A stretch of 64,000 bases of DNA from Dimorphilus gyrociliatus (GCA_904063045.1 CAJFCJ010000010.1:434001-498000); one strand, 5' to 3'; numbered from the stretch's first letter, positions 37,947 through 49,709 are shown. Notes: generated by a model not told the origin, from the sequence alone. Program-made: numbers and translations.

Positions 37947-40900
37947 CTAAGCACGTTCGCCACCCTCTTCTGCAGACTTTAATAAAGATCCATTTCTATA
38001 GAAAACCGGCGCAGGTCTCATATATGGTGATCTTCGTGGTGGTTCAGCTGGCGTTAAAGGCTCTAATTCGTGTAAAGAATGGCTTGTGCTAGCTGTTTCT
38101 TCACTTTGTACGGCGTATACGGTCTTATCTTCATGAGAACCGTCCGATTCACAACAGTTTGATGTCGGCCAATTTGCTTGTAAGAAATCGCCCTCCGGAC
38201 CAACAACGCTTAAAAGGGCCGGTAGTACAAAGATGCCCGTTAACCAGGTAGATAAAGAGACGAAAGCCAGAAGAGCACCAAGTTGAAAATACGCTCTCAG
38301 GGGTGCAAATACAAAACTAATGCCAATTGCACCAGTACTTAGGGAGGAAAATGTGACTGCAGGGCCACAATTCTTCAAAGCCGTTCGTAGCCTTGATAAT
38401 CTCCTCAAATCAGGCGACAACCTATAAGCCATACTAACTTGAAGAATTCCATCCACGCATAAACCAACAGAGAGAACGATTAGAACAGCTTGTACTGAAT
38501 CTAATTCAGGTGAGACGAGAGTCAAAAGACCTAAAGTAGCAGACGTGGCTGCGGCAATACAGAGCGTTGATAAGATAGCAAGTATAAGGTTAAGAGATCC
38601 GATTAAAGAGACGAAGCCAGCAACGCAAACTGAAACTATTACCCCAGATTGGACACCTTTAAGAAGATGGTTCTGCAAGTCAACCAGATTAAACTCAGAC
38701 GTAAAGAAGCCATTCGACATTTCGGGTGGGGCGGACTTCATTAATTTTTTAACATCATTCTCTACGGCTTCGCGAAACCGAAGTGTATCTTCATAGTTCC
38801 TCGTATAAGGTTGTGTCGAGTCAAACTGAACTATTAGACCAGATAATTTTCTTTTAAAATCATATCTGAGACCTGAAGTTTTTGTGGCCGAACCATAGAA
38901 TAGGTGGCTAGTTCTCCACGCTTCCCTACGCCAACGGTCAACACATTCCTCATATTGGGAACCCATTAATGGAAAGGTTGTTGCATTCTTGCAACACCTG
39001 AAATCTTTTACACCAAGGCAGGACTGTCGTACAAAATCTACTACTCCTTCAATATAACACCCGTTAACAACACCTGGTAATAGGCCCTGCTTAGAATCAA
39101 CGTAGTGAATTTTCCGCATACTTTTACAAAAGTTTAAAAGCCATAGCTGGGATTCATTAGCAGATGGATTAAATAAATGATCATAGATTGGTGGATAGTA
39201 AGAAGTAGTAGGGGAGAAAGAGTGTCGTCGATCCTTAGCAATGACTCCCCAAACGATCCATATTGGCATTGGGCGTCGTTTTTTTGCAGCCGCCCTTTCC
39301 CAAAGGAACTCCATTTTGTAACGGTCATAAGCTTCTAGTGGATGATCAGAATGGAAGAGAGCTAACGAAGGGGATGATGGTAGCCTTATCGTCGGGTATA
39401 CAAAAGTCGTTAAGCAGCCGAGTAGAATAAGTAAAAAGAGCAAGCTGTATGAGGCAAGAACATGGAACGTGATTCGGGAATTTAAAAAAGATAAGAATTC
39501 TTTAGAATTCACTTAAATTATTCAATCGGGCTGCGACAGATGCCTTTCTAAACGATTTTGGCAGCAGGTTGTCTTTTTAAAAAAAAATTATTTTTTTTAC
39601 TTTGTTCTAAGAGATTATATAAAAAAGAATATTTTTTATTTATTTATATATTTGCACTTAAATAATCCAAAAATGCAACATAATTATCTTTTTCATACTT
39701 TATTTAAACAGGCTGTTTTCTTACAAAAACTATTTTTAGGCCCACAGCAACAATTTGTGCTCTATTGCTTGCGGGAAGTCTGATTGAATATTCGATTTCG
39801 CAATTGTCTAGTAATAAAATATCGATTTAATTTTATCTGCTCGATCATAAATCGTTTTAGTTAAATTTATACTTAAGGATATTCTCTAGAATATATATAT
39901 ATATATATATATAGAGGACTTTTCCCTTGCTAAGCTTTTGAGCTGGCTTTGTGGAATATTATTCTTATTCTTTTTTCCCCTCTTATTTCTATCCGTTTTG
40001 ATTGCTTGAAATCTATGATTTATAATAAATTTTAACGTTTTCTCCTACAAGAATTGTTTCAGTATATTGGCCTCAATTTTCTTTTCGTAGCAGCTACTTT
40101 TTCTTCCTTTTTATGAGCGATAATATAGTTTTACGGTAAATAGAAAAGTAGAACTTTTCCTCAATGCAACGTTAAGTAGGCGTAAAAGCTTACACCATAA
40201 TATATGTATATATCCTAAGATACTACAGGCATAGTGGCTGTAAGATCTAAGCCCAATTATTCTCATTTTCTGAAACTTTTTTTGGCGCGAAATTAGCCAC
40301 ATTTTCATCTTTTGTCAGAAAGTGTAATAAGAAAATCTTTGTGGGAAAGAGTTAAAGAGAGGGTCAATGATTCCTTCTCGAATCACGTTCCATATCCAAA
40401 AATATCGCAGACGAAGAATGACGGTGGGTAGAAGGTCGTCGAAAAACGTTCTAACTAATCTTGTGGCTTTCTCGTAGAACACAAATCGAGGATATACGCC
40501 CCCGCAATATTGATCATGCAGCAACGCAGCAGCTGGCAACCACGTTACCGATAGTAATAAATGTAGGCCAACTGCTAAGCTGGAAAAAACGGCGAAACAG
40601 CGAATGCTAACGATGGCAGATAACAAATTTGATAGCAACGCTCCGGCGGTTGTCGTACTGGTCGCTAGCATACAATAAGTTGAATGCCGGAGGCTGTTAA
40701 GTACCAGACGTTCCAGCGTTCCTGTTAGTTTATCCGATTTGGCTAACTTCCAAATTTGTAGGTAGACAAATGCATCGTCAACACCTACGGCTAATAGCAA
40801 AACACCCGTCAGAATGTTGACGAAAGGGAAAAAGTTCATTGATAGGATGAAAACGTAGATAAAATAGGCTAGAATTAGGGCGAGGAAGATCTGTAGTAAC

Positions 40901-42146
40901 ACAACAATTGTGATGAACAACGAAGAACTGTAAAGCCAAATGGTACATAAGACGAACAATGCGCCCATACAGCCGTATTTTAAATCGATCTTCAAGTGCT
41001 CCGTGAACAAGGCTTCTTTTACGCCGAATCTGCATTGAGATTATTAAAGGGATATGATTCAGACTTGTTTGTTTTCTTTTCTCAAAGTTTCTTATTAATT
41101 ACACTTGCTTTTATGTTTTAATTATAACAATTATTTTGTTTATATAGTAATAAACATGTCAAGTCAAATTTTTTTAAATAATTACTTATCAATAATACTA
41201 TTAGATATAAAGATATTGTAACGGATCTGAATCACGTCCCTAGCAGCAACTAATTCAGCATGTTCATCTCTCATATTTAAAAAGTCGACAGAGTCCCAGA
41301 AGGGTAAGGCAGTTTCTGAGCTAGCACTTATTGGTAAAAAGGATGCGATATAGCTTACATCCTTACGGCGACCAAAACTTCCGTCGATTAGAAACTGAAC
41401 AACTTCATCATACCCATTACAGTTTCCGCTACTATTCGAGCATCTCTTGATAGCCGATAAGAAAATTTTAAGATTTCTATTATTTATCGAACTACAATTG
41501 TTGTCAGCAGCTAAAATTGATGTCACAGAACGAATTGGGCAGCAGGAACAGTTGGCCGATGTTTCGCAGTCTTTACGAAATATCGTGGAAGCAGTTGCAC
41601 TTTTTTCAAATCGGCAGACACTTTTAACGAAGGATAGAATAGATGAGGAACGCCTATACCAAATTAGTCTTACATATCGATGGGCCGATTCTAAAACAGA
41701 AGATGATTAATTACACAGATGTAAGCCACCTACTCTAATTTATTGTACTAGTATTGTTTCAAAGAATTTTCATTAAATTAGTCCTATTAAAAATGGTTAA
41801 GAAAGGACTATAGTCTTCATCATGAAAACGAGATGATTCCACTGTTAGAAGTATTACTTTAAAAAAAAACCTCTTAAAATGAAAGATGAGAGTGAAGTGA
41901 TGAAAAACGAGAGTAAAAAAGAATCTTGGCAAAAAAAAATTGTAATCTTTCAACAGTCACAACACTAGAAAAATAAAATAAGGATCAACATTTTTTCCCT
42001 TTTTTTCTCTCTTTTTTCTACTTTGTTAACACTTCAAGCCTACGTTATAATTACTTATCAAACAAACAAATTACGATCTATCGTATGTTAAACAATATTG
42101 ACTATTTTTACGTAGTTTAAGGTAAACTAAACGAAGAAAGAAAATG

Positions 42147-42181
<35 letters not shown>

Positions 42182-45100
42182 TAGACAGAGATAAAGAATT
42201 AGAGAGGGAGAGAAAGATGTAAGGATAAAAAAAAAGAAAAAAAAGGGAATTTTGTTGTTCCATCTTAGAAACCTCATTAGTAATTACTCTAAAAGTATTT
42301 TTTACCGTGGAATAAGGTTGAAGAAGTTTATTCTATCATTTCTTCTTGATACTATTGTGCATTTATAGGTCTCTTATACTTGTGTTTTAAACCGGATACT
42401 CTTTATTTAATATAGAATATATATTAATTTTGCTTAGTATGTCCAGCAACTATTAAATGATCAATAAATTGTGCACACTGTCTATACAGCATATACAACT
42501 GTATATTAAAGTCTGCTTTTTTTTCTCTTTTCATTGATTATTATTTTCTTATAAAAATGCTTCGTCGATGGAAAATGGAGTAGTTTTAATTAATGGTATC
42601 TTTAGTGCGAAGTAGGAGGGAGCGATAATCGATTATTAATAAAATCAACGTATTGTAAATTGTGGAAACGTATGGAATAGTTTAGAACTTGTAAGAAACG
42701 TTTGGTATTTGCTGTTGAGTCAATAAAGTTACTAAAACGAATAATTGACTGGCACCAGTTCAATAGTTAATTTTCGTTCTAAAAGGAATTAATCCTCCTA
42801 TCAAAGTTTTTTATTAAACCAATCAAGGTTCAATTATCCTTTACACGAGACAGATGTGTTTACTTCTTATTTTTTCTCCCAAGTTGATCTGGTTCGTAGT
42901 TCACTGCCACAGGTAGTCAATTTATGGGACAACATCAGCTTATATTACCTTTTACAGCTATCTTTTTGATGAAAATGGTATGAAATAGAGAGAGAAAAAT
43001 GTTTATAACGGATGCTTAGGATGGAACGTTAATGAGATTAGACGCCTTTAGTGTATGGGAAATCGCGTCTAATATATAATTAACGCGAAGCAAACTGTGA
43101 AATATATATTGCTACACCGGGTCGAGTGCAAAGGTGTCACGTAAATCTTTCTTGCTTTCCTTAAACAAAACTCTCCACTAAACCTTGGTCAAATGTCTTT
43201 TCAATGGAATTAATTTACATAATTAGTAGAATCATACACTTTTACATTTTTTTTTAACTTTTCCTTTCCTTAAGATACTTTTATAAATGCTCTAATGGTG
43301 CATAATAGAATTTAGAGTACAGTCCAGTTGCTTCTGGTTTTTGCCCACAGACGTCAGGTGTCAAGTCACACATATCGGTCAACTTTTAATAGCTTTTCAT
43401 CCATTGACAAGCCTTCATTTAAAAAAAATTTTTTTCTCGCTAGACCTTTTAAAATACTGGCAATCAAAATTTTTATCGAAAGTTGAGATTTTCCATGTTG
43501 AATGACGTTTTCTATTGATTAAGGTTTCTTACGAATAAGTTAAATTTACAAAATATAGAAAAAAAACGACAACAAAATTGGGGCAAACGTTGAAATATGT
43601 CACTACTAAGTGATAAACTAGAAAATATTGAATTTTTTCAACAATCTATATAATATAGGAATTTCATTTCTCAACGTATATAATTTTTATCTATCCAAAG
43701 AAACGCTTTTTTAAGGCAAGCGTATCAGTTGAATGTACTGTCGATTACACGACCTGAGCAATACATGCATGAAGCAACGGAGTGTCTATGGAAACCGGAC
43801 CTAAGCCTTATATTTACCATAATATATATATGTATATATATTCCTCGAATTATGATTGATTAAAAATGTAATTTGAGTTTTTAAAGGAGAACATAAAACT
43901 TTTGAAAAATTCGTGATTTGTTCAGTGCGATTACTAAACCTTTCAATAATTTTGCAACTTTATCACGAAACTATTAAAGAAATTAAAAGAGGTATCTATA
44001 AGAAGTTTTTAAATAGAAGTCATTGATCTGAAAATGTATCTACACCGCATTTATCTTGACTTTACATTTTGAAAATGATACTCCAAGTTTCCTTACCTGG
44101 ATTAAGCCCCTGGCAAACTCCTGCGCATTTAGGCCTTTCAAATTTGACACTATTATCCTCATCGTCGTATGTGATATTCGTATCGGATGGTGAAATTTTG
44201 CGACGGCGTCTATTACCATCTTTTGTCGCCTCCAGTAAGTCTAGTAATGTCGTATCGCGCCTGGCCCACTCAGTATTTCGAGTCTCGAATCCCTTAATTT
44301 GGTTGTTCGTGAGTGAAATTAAAAAGAAAGAAATAACAGAAAGTAAATAAATAAGAGCATAAAGCTGCTATTTTTTTTTTAAAAAGAGAGACATTTTTAA
44401 TCTTTATAGGCCTAGCATAGAGAAAATTTTCTACCTCGCTTGCCTCCCCTAGTCGCGGTGCTTTTCCGCTAAGTAAAACGGAGACGCAGGCGGCTAGTGT
44501 CACCGCTAAAACGATTAAAACTATCACCAAAGGACGCCTGGACAGAAAACGGCAGTATCTGCAAATAAAATAATTTTTTTATCAATTATTTATGACGATA
44601 TATATATATTTATATGTTGCTTGTTAAAAAAGTTCGAAGATTGTTGTATAATACAGAAGATAATTCTCAAATACGTCAGAGGGCGTGGTTTTATTCCCTG
44701 TAACTATCTTTATCGTCATTTACCATCCTTATAATACTTGATAAGTACGGTATAATCTTTCTATAACTTTTTATTATTAATTTCTTAATAAATTTCAATT
44801 TTAATGAACGGTAGATTATTTACACCTCTCTTTTTACCGTCATAAATAAAACCGAAATTTTATCCAGATATAATCCAGCAGGGGGTGTAGTTTACAATTG
44901 CCTATAAACTTCGTTTTACTGGAGACCCATTACATCTATACTTAACGTACTCTCATGAACAGAATATGTGTGCATATGATATCTATAATACTCGTATACA
45001 TTTACAGTATATCTAATTTTGTATAGATCGACAAAAAGATCTATTTACCGACAGTTTTTCTGACGTAAGTAGTTACATAGCCCATACATTATTAATAATA

Positions 45101-47027: not shown

Positions 47028-49709
47028 TCACCTTTGCTGCTGCATTTCACTTAGATATTTCAAAACACTTTGTATAAATCGTAGTCTTTGTGTTAAATTG
47101 TTCTTTTCTAGCAAATTAATCTTATATTGCTCTTCTAAAGGTAAGCTAGATATTAGCCACCATAGCCATATTGGGCCATCTTTTTCTTTAATCTCATCCT
47201 CTGTCAGACCTGGACTTGGAATATCGCCATTTTGCTGTGATATTTTGGAGCGTCGACTTTCACTCAAAGTTGCTAACCATTCTCTGCTCTGCTCTAATAC
47301 TTGATCGTGCAAATTCATTGTGTCTTGACGTTCAGCCTCGGGTATCGGCTCATCCTCTAGAATTCTAACGTTAGCAACATTGTAACCGTCAACGTATGAT
47401 CTATCCAATACTGTAAATCTTTTGGATCCTTGAGTTATAATTAGACTCCTTCCATCTGGTAAATACGTAACATCTTCAATGTACATTAGAGTTCCTATAT
47501 TCGCATACGAGTTATCAGACATTGGTCTAACCATACCGAAAGTTCTAGAACCATTTTCTATACACCTTCGAACCATAAGACGGTATCGAGGCTCAAAAAT
47601 GTGAAGTGGACAACGTACACCTGGAAAAGTAACAACGCATACAAATATGGGGACTTTCATCTCTCGGTCGCTGATTCCTGAAACGCACAGACTTTCGGTT
47701 AATAACTCGGAGTAGTGTTCGGAATATTGTTGAGGATAGAAATGCTTTACAATCAATTCGAAAATTTTATCGGTAGAGAATAGCCTATGCTTAAGCATTT
47801 GAACCAGTGAACTTTTGCATAGAGGACAATTGGGAGAGTGATCCAGAGATCTTTTGAGACATTCTTTACAAAACGTATGACCGCAAACAGTGGTAGACGG
47901 CTCAAACAACATCCTCCAACACAAAGAACAGTTAATTTCTTCCATCGGAAGTTGAGCGTCGTCTAACTTCCTTTTTATGTTGTCGATTGAATCCTCTGGA
48001 TCATGAATATGAGTTCTCTGTCGAATCATGGACGACTTTGCAACATTCGCCCTTAATGCTTCTTCCGGCGTAGAAGTTTTGATAAACTGGAACATTCGTT
48101 GAGAGATAGTTTCTCTTAAATCAGGGTTATCAGGATTTAAAGATAGACCAGTCATATATGATCTTATTGCTTCTTCAGTGTAGCCTAATTGTATAAGAAT
48201 CTCACCAAGATGGTAGTGAGCCTGAAGAAAATTTCCAAATATATAAAAATAATAAATTTTAGAAGCAAAACTTTTTAAAAAATTAAAATTATGAATATAT
48301 GAATAATTAATTAGCAAATTAAATTAACAAATATCATATAGTAGGGTAGAAGTAAAAAAAAAAGAGAAAAGAAAAAACTATAACACTTACTCTCCCTAGT
48401 GGAGAGTTTCGTAAAATATATTACTGTAATAATTAATAGAACTAGAATGCGTATTAGAGAAGGTAATAAGTGGAATTTGTAATAATGAGTCAATCTCCTT
48501 TTAGTGGTAATAATTTGTAATAAATAACCGTTTTTTCTATTAATATAACTTTAAACAATTGTTAAATTTCGATAAAAAATATAAAACAATCTAACCTAGT
48601 ATACTACTCAATTATATAGATATATATATACCTTAACTTTTCATTAATGGGCTAAATAGTAGTATACATTGACTATGTGTCCTTGAAATAGAAAACACGC
48701 TGGCAATGGTTTTATATATTATCGTTGAGTATGTCCTAGTTTCGAGTTCAACAAATAGGTCTCACTGGTAACATTATTTATTGTTATTTTCATTATCAAT
48801 ATCAGCCTATATCTTCCTTCTGATTTCTTTATTACTCATGTACATAGTTATTATAAAAAAAAATGGATAAGAAACCTAAATAAGAATAAAGAAACAATGA
48901 TAACTTGAGTGAGACCTACTTTTAAATAATGAATGTGTGTAGAATTAGAATGTTTTCTCTATAGTTTATTTACCTTAATCCAATTTGGCTTAAGATTAAT
49001 AACTCTTTCGGCATCTTTCAACGCCGAATCTCCTCGTCCATTTTCCATGTGTAATCGACTTCTCATTGACAAATAAATATGCTTTTCAAGTCCTTAACAG
49101 TGATAATTTACGAGTTATTTAATAATAATAATAACGATAATGTATAGATTATGTTTAAAGACTTTTTTTCTTACCTAATTTAAGCGACTCTTCTATAATC
49201 TCCAGACATTCATTATACATCTTATTAACTAGAAGGGCTTCAACTCTTTTCCTTCTATCCAATATATCTTTATATTCTGGTATCCATCCTCTTATTAACT
49301 TGTTTAAGAGAACATTTAAATTTCTATTAAAGTCTGGAGTAACAACATTTTGACAAATGTTACAGTTAACTATTCCTGATAAACAACTATTGCAGAAAGT
49401 ATGACCACAATCTACTGTAACAGGATCTATTAGGAGTCCATAACAGATCTCACAAGTTAACGTAGAAAATAGATCATTTGAAATTTGTTGAGCCATCTTG
49501 AGGTTTTCAACTAGACAGTCGATAAGCTTGGATAAATTTGAAGGTTTGAATTCTTTATGTTTGGAAGCTCGAAGGTATACTAAATAAGCTGATCCTAAGT
49601 CGCCATCGCTGGCCAAGTCGTCGGCCTTTAAAATCAATTGTTCAAAATTTTCATTTGTTTCAGGTTGTGAGTCTGTTAGCGTCGCAGTTTCAAATACGTT
49701 TCTCTCCAT
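47028..49709 (-). CDS. LONRF: LON peptidase N-terminal domain and RING finger protein (3 exons)
   Basis: RING1 CEICYGLLIDPVTVDCGHTFCNSC, TPR-like repeats (SALKDAERVINLKPNWIK|AHYHLG), RING2 CSLCWRMLFEPSTTVCGHTFCKEC and LON domain (PGVRCPLHIFEPRYRLMVRRC). Confidence 0.94.

Follow-up and report, generated by a model that had tools for sequence, protein, structure and literature searches.

Non-GT introns with complementary ends in a dispatched gene of Dimorphilus gyrociliatus

Here we describe a 946-nt intron that begins with GA, in place of the near-universal GT, and ends with AG in a dispatched (DISP) gene, which serves in Hedgehog release and is carried on the minus strand of a 64-kb stretch of DNA (the window; GCA_904063045.1, contig CAJFCJ010000010.1, G+C ~31%) from an assembly that is likely that of the miniature marine annelid Dimorphilus gyrociliatus. 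The two ends of this intron are complementary, such that the 5′ splice site and the adjoining exon bases fall within a predicted long-range helix, and a neighbouring intron of the same gene, which begins with GG, has a predicted helix in the same register. Both introns and both pairings are found again in the genome of a related lineage. On balance, we favour the view that the GA-AG intron is a genuine U2-type intron with a degenerate second position, in which the helix would act as a cis bridge that supplies the pairing of the splice site at the 5′ end with that at the 3′ end, hides an out-of-frame GU and leaves position +2 free to drift.

The gene was identified from its exons, whose open reading frames (ORFs) were used as separate queries, joining being limited to short local translations as a check on the reading frame. 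In a PDB search, the ORF of exon 4 (41010-40318) matched DISP1 structures with E values of 1e-37 to 1e-30 (best 1.3e-37, 7fif), and the ORF of the last exon (39512-37950) matched the DISP1 structure 6xe6 at 2.1e-55. Additionally, the Pfam entries PF02460 (Patched SSD, for sterol-sensing domain) and PF12349 (Sterol-sensing) were matched in the DISP exons. Judged by its similarity to solved DISP1 structures, which covers the sterol-sensing domain and the second half of the protein, this is a gene for a Dispatched (RND/SSD) protein. The exons and introns that bear on the argument are given below, with positions counted in the window.

37947..39444, minus strand: last exon, encoding transmembrane helix (TM) 7, the second extracellular domain, TM8-12, the tail and the stop; from the PDB match to DISP1 and the contigs
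39445..40390, minus strand: intron 1, 946 nt, GA-AG, phase 2 (TG/C, giving Cys); from the contig joint and the ortholog at L001 5521-6527
40391..41029, minus strand: exon 4, 639 nt, 213 codons, encoding the transmembrane helices of the Dispatched sterol-sensing domain; from PDB DISP1 and Pfam matches and X7 record 21
41030..41239, minus strand: intron 2, 210 nt, GG-AG, phase 2, sister of intron 1; from the X7 joint
41691..44096, minus strand: intron B, canonical GT-AG, same gene, without end pairing (z +0.8); control
44293..44434, minus strand: intron A, canonical GT-AG, same gene, without end pairing (z +1.2); control

Three lineages have to be told apart in what follows: that of the window (W), a close relative from which transcript contigs are available (R), and a second, more distant relative represented by genomic contigs (L). 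Transcript evidence came from R contigs of runs X1 and X2 (one sample) and X7 (another), which lie on the exons only; with 56 differences from the window in 636 exon positions (~9%), they come from a close relative and not from the sequenced strain. One X7 contig (record 21, 3395 nt) runs through five exons (44560-44435, 44292-44097, 41690-41240, 41029-40391 and from 39444 onward), and contigs of all three runs join 39444 to 40391, removing 946 nt whose minus-strand ends are GA and AG, with an ambiguity of 1 nt. The RNA label of these runs is only a guess; the X7 contig is taken to be mRNA because it skips four introns, two of them canonical. Read without splicing, intron 1 contains stops. The spliced product across the junction is RYFW-I-C-LLFLL (RYFWICLLF), which restores the alignment of TM7 to DISP1 and gives a W-to-P spacing of 19 residues, equal to that of mouse and human DISP1 in the PDB alignments.

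The original prediction, made from the window's sequence alone, had placed a GA-AG intron at exactly 40390-39445, derived the peptide over its junction and likened the W-to-P spacing to that of human DISP1. The R contigs bear out the boundaries and the peptide, the L genome has the GA donor together with both arms of the helix, and the spacing is that of the human protein. It was also correct that the GT at 40386, in phase 0, does not share a reading frame with the AG at 39446-39445, and, between the two candidate donors that spliced sequence was to tell apart, 40390 and 40393, the R contigs support 40390.

Other ways of splicing the segment were considered and rejected. AT-AC (40395/39447) and GT-AC (40386/39447) introns, as well as in-frame upstream GT donors at 40447 and 40480 joined to the AG at 39445, are contradicted by the contig junction and would cost the protein a segment that is conserved in DISP1; no arrangement of a stwintron or of recursive splicing as a source of GT fits the sequence. 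Forms that skip exon 4 or retain an intron were absent from the contigs, which tend to drop rare isoforms, and the assembled mRNA includes exon 4. Coral metatranscriptome runs returned by the run search had only ~30-nt low-complexity matches to the window.

The helix of intron 1 and the elements around it are as follows.

40375..40397, minus strand: 5′ arm, GGATATG/GAACGTGATTCGAGAA, comprising the final 7 bases of the exon, the 5′ splice site GA and intron positions +1 to +16
39458..39480, minus strand: 3′ arm, TTCCCGAATCACGTTCCATGTTC, spanning -36 to -14 of the intron, with +1 (40390) paired to base -21 (39465); includes GAATCAC
39445..39457, minus strand: pyrimidine-rich tail, unpaired, whose final CAG is the 3′ splice site; from the sequence and the contig joint
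40385..40386, minus strand: GT at +5/+6, within the helix; it belongs to the GNANGT donor signature and might act as a cryptic donor, out of frame
40367..40386, minus strand: local hairpin of 7-8 bp (GTGATTC/GAATCAT) with a 6-nt loop; from W and L folds of the first 70 nt

Over 23 positions the arms form 20 Watson-Crick pairs, two G-U pairs and one A-C mismatch (40378 opposite 39477), and a repeat search returns 19 nt at 95% (39462-39480/40375-40393) with a perfect core of 15 nt. The donor region pairs with the last 60 nt of the intron at -34.5 kcal/mol, compared with -17.1 +/- 3.0 kcal/mol for dinucleotide shuffles (z -5.9; none of 1000 shuffles reaches the observed value). When the whole intron was folded with 40-nt flanks (1026 nt) by a partition-function method, the pairs from -7 to +12 had probabilities of 0.97-1.00 and were part of the minimum free energy structure. 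The helix is real in the sequence and, although it closes a loop of ~900 nt, dominates the structure predicted in these computations. The 23-bp duplex over the exon-intron boundary, with its one A-C and two G-U positions, is therefore as originally described and lies far beyond the shuffled range, and the structural check proposed for it, made here by fold computation, agrees. No Rfam family was matched in intron 1 or anywhere in the window.

Two further features of the intron concern the same sequence. The local hairpin just downstream of the GA donor is conserved (it is also present at about 5525-5545 of L001); it would form first during transcription and would compete with the long-range helix for the donor-proximal arm. 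Candidate branch sites are A-26 in the GAATCAC of the 3′ arm, or A-37 to -39 and A-48 upstream of that arm; GAATCAC with its A at -26 is found in both intron 1 and intron 2.

Intron 2 reads GCTGCTAG/GGACGTGATTCAGA at its 5′ end and closes with TCTGAATCATATCCCT, a further 18 nt and CAG/A. The X7 contig joins 41031 to 41243 with one letter between them, which equals a 41029/41240 junction if R is taken to carry a synonymous GCT>GCA change. Its arms lie as follows.

41225..41241, minus strand: 5′ arm of intron 2, exon -2 to intron +15, with the donor word GGACGTGATTC
41048..41064, minus strand: 3′ arm of intron 2; base -21 (41050) pairs with +1 (41239)

The ends of intron 2 pair at -25.9 kcal/mol (z -5.0; 0 of 1000 shuffles), with a pair probability of ~1.0 in the full-length fold. 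Introns 1 and 2 have in common the register, in which +1 pairs with -21, as well as the donor word GRACGTGATTC, whose exact matches in the 64 kb number three and all lie at these arms. The original prediction had not noted that intron 1 is one of a pair. The GT-AG introns A and B of the same gene lack end pairing.

A comparison with L was made possible by an ORF related to that of exon 4 (P0001, 95% identical), which led to the genomic contigs L001 and L002; L004 belongs to the same lineage, and the L contigs derive from SRR23372228, SRR23372229 and SRR31984834. L differs from the window exon at 134 of 636 positions (~21%) and has just 15 of the 40 differences listed for R. Two word-based protein searches with the exon ORFs returned only L and the window's own model, and no further lineage. 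The public data thus hold at least two other lineages related to the worm of the window, R at ~9% (RNA contigs only) and L at ~21% (genomic contigs).

The ortholog of intron 1 in L (L001 5521-6527, 1007 nt) starts TATG/GAACGTGATTC, has a GA donor and carries the complementary arm, with +1 to -21 pairing, an unbroken core of 17 bp and an identical 17-nt core of the 3′ arm; the helix has pair probabilities near 1.0 in the full-length folds of both W and L. Since they are present in the genomes of both lineages, the GA donor and the helix predate the split of W and L. The original prediction would have been undermined by an ortholog that kept the GA donor and lacked the duplex; in L, both arms are present with GA.

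Intron 2 of L (L001 4678-4881, 204 nt) is a GT-AG intron with the canonical start AG/GTATGT. Its helix reaches -19.6 kcal/mol (7 of 1000 shuffles), and the U at +2 lies opposite a C in the unchanged 3′ arm. In W, where the donor is GGACGU and the helix reaches -25.9 kcal/mol, the G at +2 pairs with that same C, so that the base that abolishes the GT of intron 2 also perfects its helix. The +1:-21 register is kept in both introns and both lineages despite differences in length (946 vs 1007 nt and 210 vs 204 nt). When intron 1 of W and L is aligned, the first ~45 nt and the last ~400 nt are conserved and 40340-39860 is unalignable. The conserved 3′ part (39445-39860) is ~90% identical to L, with long perfect blocks, among them ~39815-39760, 39575-39530 and 39525-39487, and no Rfam match; a regulatory element within the intron, or an RNA that lacks annotation, could account for it.

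With regard to intron class, the donor of intron 1, GAACGT, retains G+1, A+3, G+5 and U+6, and its tail, TTGCCTCATACAG, is pyrimidine-rich before the AG; in intron 2, the G at +5 is retained as a G-U wobble. The three non-GT donors and the GT donor all fit GNANGU, the positions relevant to U1 and U6 (-1, +1, +3, +5 and +6) being kept. These retained donor positions, together with ordinary 3′ ends of the pyrimidine-rich...CAG kind, point to the major spliceosome with a relaxed +2 rather than to a U12-type or non-spliceosomal intron. A U12-type assignment was rejected: the donor GAACGTGA is not /RTATCCTT, and the branch site TCCTTRAY, which such introns have 10-15 nt from their 3′ end, is absent from the last 40 nt of intron 1.

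The mechanism that we propose takes these elements together. In the donor UG/GAACGU, the U at +2 would have been lost and the other consensus positions retained. The helix, in which exon -7 to intron +16 pairs with -36 to -14, would set the donor beside the intron's 3′ end, with the AG on a single-stranded tail of 13-20 nt; in this way it could replace or supplement a weak U1-mediated definition of the 5′ splice site and the pairing of sites across the intron, and it would bury the out-of-frame GU at +5/+6. Spliceosomal helicases would then have to open the helix so that U6 and U5 could take over the donor. Pairing in cis would relax selection on +2, such that GA, GG or GC donors could persist, and intron 2 would be a natural transition, with GT and a weaker helix in L and GG and a stronger helix in W. 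We infer that the helix forms in vivo and that it promotes splicing.

Several considerations weigh against this proposal. The transcripts that define the junction come from R, ~9% divergent from the window and not its strain, and only the exons of R are seen in them. The gene has just two non-GT and two GT introns, and the association of helix and donor type is anecdotal on its own. The arms fall in stretches that are already conserved (the 5′-most 45 nt and the 3′-most ~400 nt), so that their conservation is not exceptional. Furthermore, the differences between the W and L arms are single-sided (A-C at +13 in W, U-C at +12 in L), with no compensatory double change, and the locus therefore gives no covariation support. 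The candidate branch site may also be buried in the helix, and helices that bury a 5′ splice site are classically inhibitory, as in tau exon 10 and in the terminal stem-loop 2 (TSL2) of SMN2.

The same observations can be given a wider reading, which we put forward tentatively: a structural splicing code in this annelid lineage, in which a fixed-register cis helix (+1:-21) would serve as a U1 surrogate and make GU dispensable, the helix being gained first and GT decaying to GG or GA afterwards, as may have been caught in intron 2 between the two lineages.

It is also possible, if doubtful, that the pairing is a relic without function. Both introns would then descend from a single inverted-repeat mobile element (a miniature inverted-repeat transposable element, or an introner-like one) or from an intron duplication, the arms would be terminal inverted repeats, and the spliceosome would tolerate GA and GG. 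The introns share a terminal word of 11-14 nt (GRACGTGATTC followed by AGA), along with its complement. The splice consensus cannot account for all of this, and such a word in neighbouring introns suggests common descent, either from a mobile element or by intron duplication; the missing covariation between the W and L arms fits a relic too. There are precedents: non-canonical introns of transposon origin occur in the tunicate Fritillaria borealis (Henriet et al. 2019, as reported in PMC11282704 and PMC13326754), and the introners of the protist Amoebophrya are transposon-derived introns (PMC7789003). Like these, the dispatched introns are non-GT introns with inverted repeats at their ends, in a small aquatic organism with a compact genome. 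The Fritillaria and Amoebophrya introns, however, have target-site duplications, belong to multi-copy families and mostly have AG-AC, AG-AT or arbitrary ends, whereas the dispatched introns have G+1...AG with a GNANGU donor. No target-site duplication is present at the 23-bp helix or the 15-nt core of intron 1, nor at intron 2, and within the 64 kb the terminal word does not recur, nor was a family seen beyond the two neighbouring introns.

The layout of the repeats also bears on this account. Terminal inverted repeats are indeed present, but the 5′ arm reaches into the exon, and 13-20 nt separate the 3′ arm from the end of the intron. In intron 1, the pairing extends 7 nt into the coding exon and uses G-U pairs, which match only in sense RNA. 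The likeness of introns 1 and 2 is confined to the arms; their interiors and tails are unrelated, the 20-nt tails agreeing at 9-10 of 20 positions. Both introns were already in L, the helices persist where the intron interior is unalignable, and the helix of intron 2 is stronger where the GT has been lost.

We consider it unlikely that the helix is a negative or regulatory element, which would sequester the donor and perhaps the branch site so as to slow or gate splicing, or whose arms would compete and favour in-frame skipping of exon 4. Both the 5′ splice site and GAATCAC, the candidate branch word, lie within the helix, and the conserved local hairpin competes for the donor arm. Also, the donor of intron 2 (41222-41243) pairs with the 3′ arm of intron 1 (39456-39482) over 12 bp at -20.7 kcal/mol, compared with -22.4 kcal/mol for the cognate pairing, and the loss of exon 4, with its 639 nt (213 codons) between two phase 2 introns, would leave the reading frame intact. 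The lack of skipped and retained forms among the contigs speaks against such a role, if weakly, given that contigs drop rare isoforms.

The original prediction had offered a further alternative, an AT donor at 40393 made usable by ADAR, with the duplex as an editing-complementary structure; we regard this as highly improbable. At known editing sites, such as the Q/R site of GluA2, the upstream exon has its end paired to an intronic editing-site complementary sequence, and the likeness holds insofar as the present duplex of 19-23 bp, with its A-C mismatch, includes exon bases. It fails in that just 7 exon bases are paired, and, as ADAR substrates go, the duplex is rather short. Moreover, the mRNA retains ATATG up to 40391, so the AT at 40393 is not the donor; an inosine at +2 pairs as G and would give GG rather than GU; and a repaired GU is not needed because the neighbouring intron 2 is plain GG-AG in the genome. 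An artefact, whether the donor was misassembled or reverse transcriptase switched templates over the hairpin so as to mimic a junction, is scarcely credible: hairpins do favour such jumps, a general caveat on GA-AG sites has been given (PMC7072748) and the RNA label of the runs is guessed, but independent assemblies of two different lineages both have GA, the junction does not sit symmetrically on the helix (it falls 7 nt within one arm but 13 nt beyond the other, and its homology is 1 nt), it restores both the frame and the DISP1 alignment, and the contig that carries it also skips two GT-AG introns.

The favoured reading, a U2-type intron bridged in cis, has counterparts in fish and yeast. 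In zebrafish, spliceosomal introns of the (AC)m-(GT)n kind are bridged by helices (Lin et al. 2016, PMC4691745), and in yeast, "zipper" stems join the 5′ splice site region to the branch point region (Goguel & Rosbash 1993 and Libri et al. 1995, as cited in PMC4691745). As in those systems, the complementary segments near the ends of the dispatched intron would form a stable helix that joins the splice sites and enforces their correct pairing. The fish and yeast helices are intronic, lie beside canonical GT donors and consist of simple repeats (fish) or connect the 5′ splice site with the branch point (yeast). Unlike these, the dispatched helix is made of unique sequence, contains the 5′ splice site itself together with 7 bases of the exon, stops 13-20 nt short of the AG and accompanies non-GT donors.

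GA-AG splicing as such is efficient and frequent in some animals, namely Oikopleura dioica and Eurytemora affinis (Frey & Pucker 2020, PMC7072748); for E. affinis a variant U1 has been proposed (PMC7072748), and human FGFR genes have a GA donor that requires a GT close by (Brackenridge et al. 2003, as cited in PMC7072748). The dispatched intron resembles all three in being of U2 type, with a GA start, A at +3 and an AG end. It differs from them, no end-pairing helix having been described there, in its fixed-register helix and in the end of the exon before intron 1, which is UG and not AG. Pairing between intron ends is also a property of the nonconventional introns of Euglena, in which it has been shown to be required for splicing (PMC12501133). 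Those introns follow the code N3-CDG ... CHG-N5-6, lack GT/AG and are removed by machinery that is unknown, whereas the 3′ offset in dispatched is 20 nt; because the dispatched intron has a 3′ AG, a pyrimidine tail and a U1/U6-like donor, the spliceosome is to be preferred over a route of the Euglena type.

Elsewhere in the window, perfect inverted repeats of 15-17 nt were noted at 13751-13765/15106-15120, 54205-54219/54654-54668 and 58259-58275/60711-60727. Three such repeats within a spacing of 3.5 kb compare with ~0.1-1 expected by chance in 64 kb, and there is no obvious donor in their context. A candidate hairpin intron in a LONRF-like gene (region 48736-48973), formed by an 11-bp inverted repeat (48918-48908/48766-48756) with an AG exactly 20 nt after it, was rejected; it lies within a canonical GT intron that starts at 48973, and 11-mers of this kind occur at chance level.

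The genome paper of D. gyrociliatus makes no mention of non-canonical splice sites, and we found no description of helix-closed non-GT introns for this species in the literature. What the dispatched locus adds is an example 946 nt in length, a pair of sister introns in fixed register, a GT/GG contrast between lineages and a public gene model that is cut off. In the public assembly, the only dispatched model has 455 residues and is intronless (L003 8001-9368); its first residue is Met67 of the ORF 39512-37947, just past the GA-AG intron, and the upstream exons (to 44560) are without a model. The non-GT introns are probably the reason why the dispatched gene prediction is broken. Because such introns break gene prediction, statements on gene content and pathway loss in the D. 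gyrociliatus genome may be affected. If the helix truly substitutes for GU-dependent recognition of the donor, the locus would be a natural and genetically simple system in which to ask what GU is needed for, with the sister introns and the GT/GG contrast between lineages as ready-made mutant and compensatory designs. It could then show RNA structure taking over the pairing of splice sites in an animal with an otherwise conservative genome.

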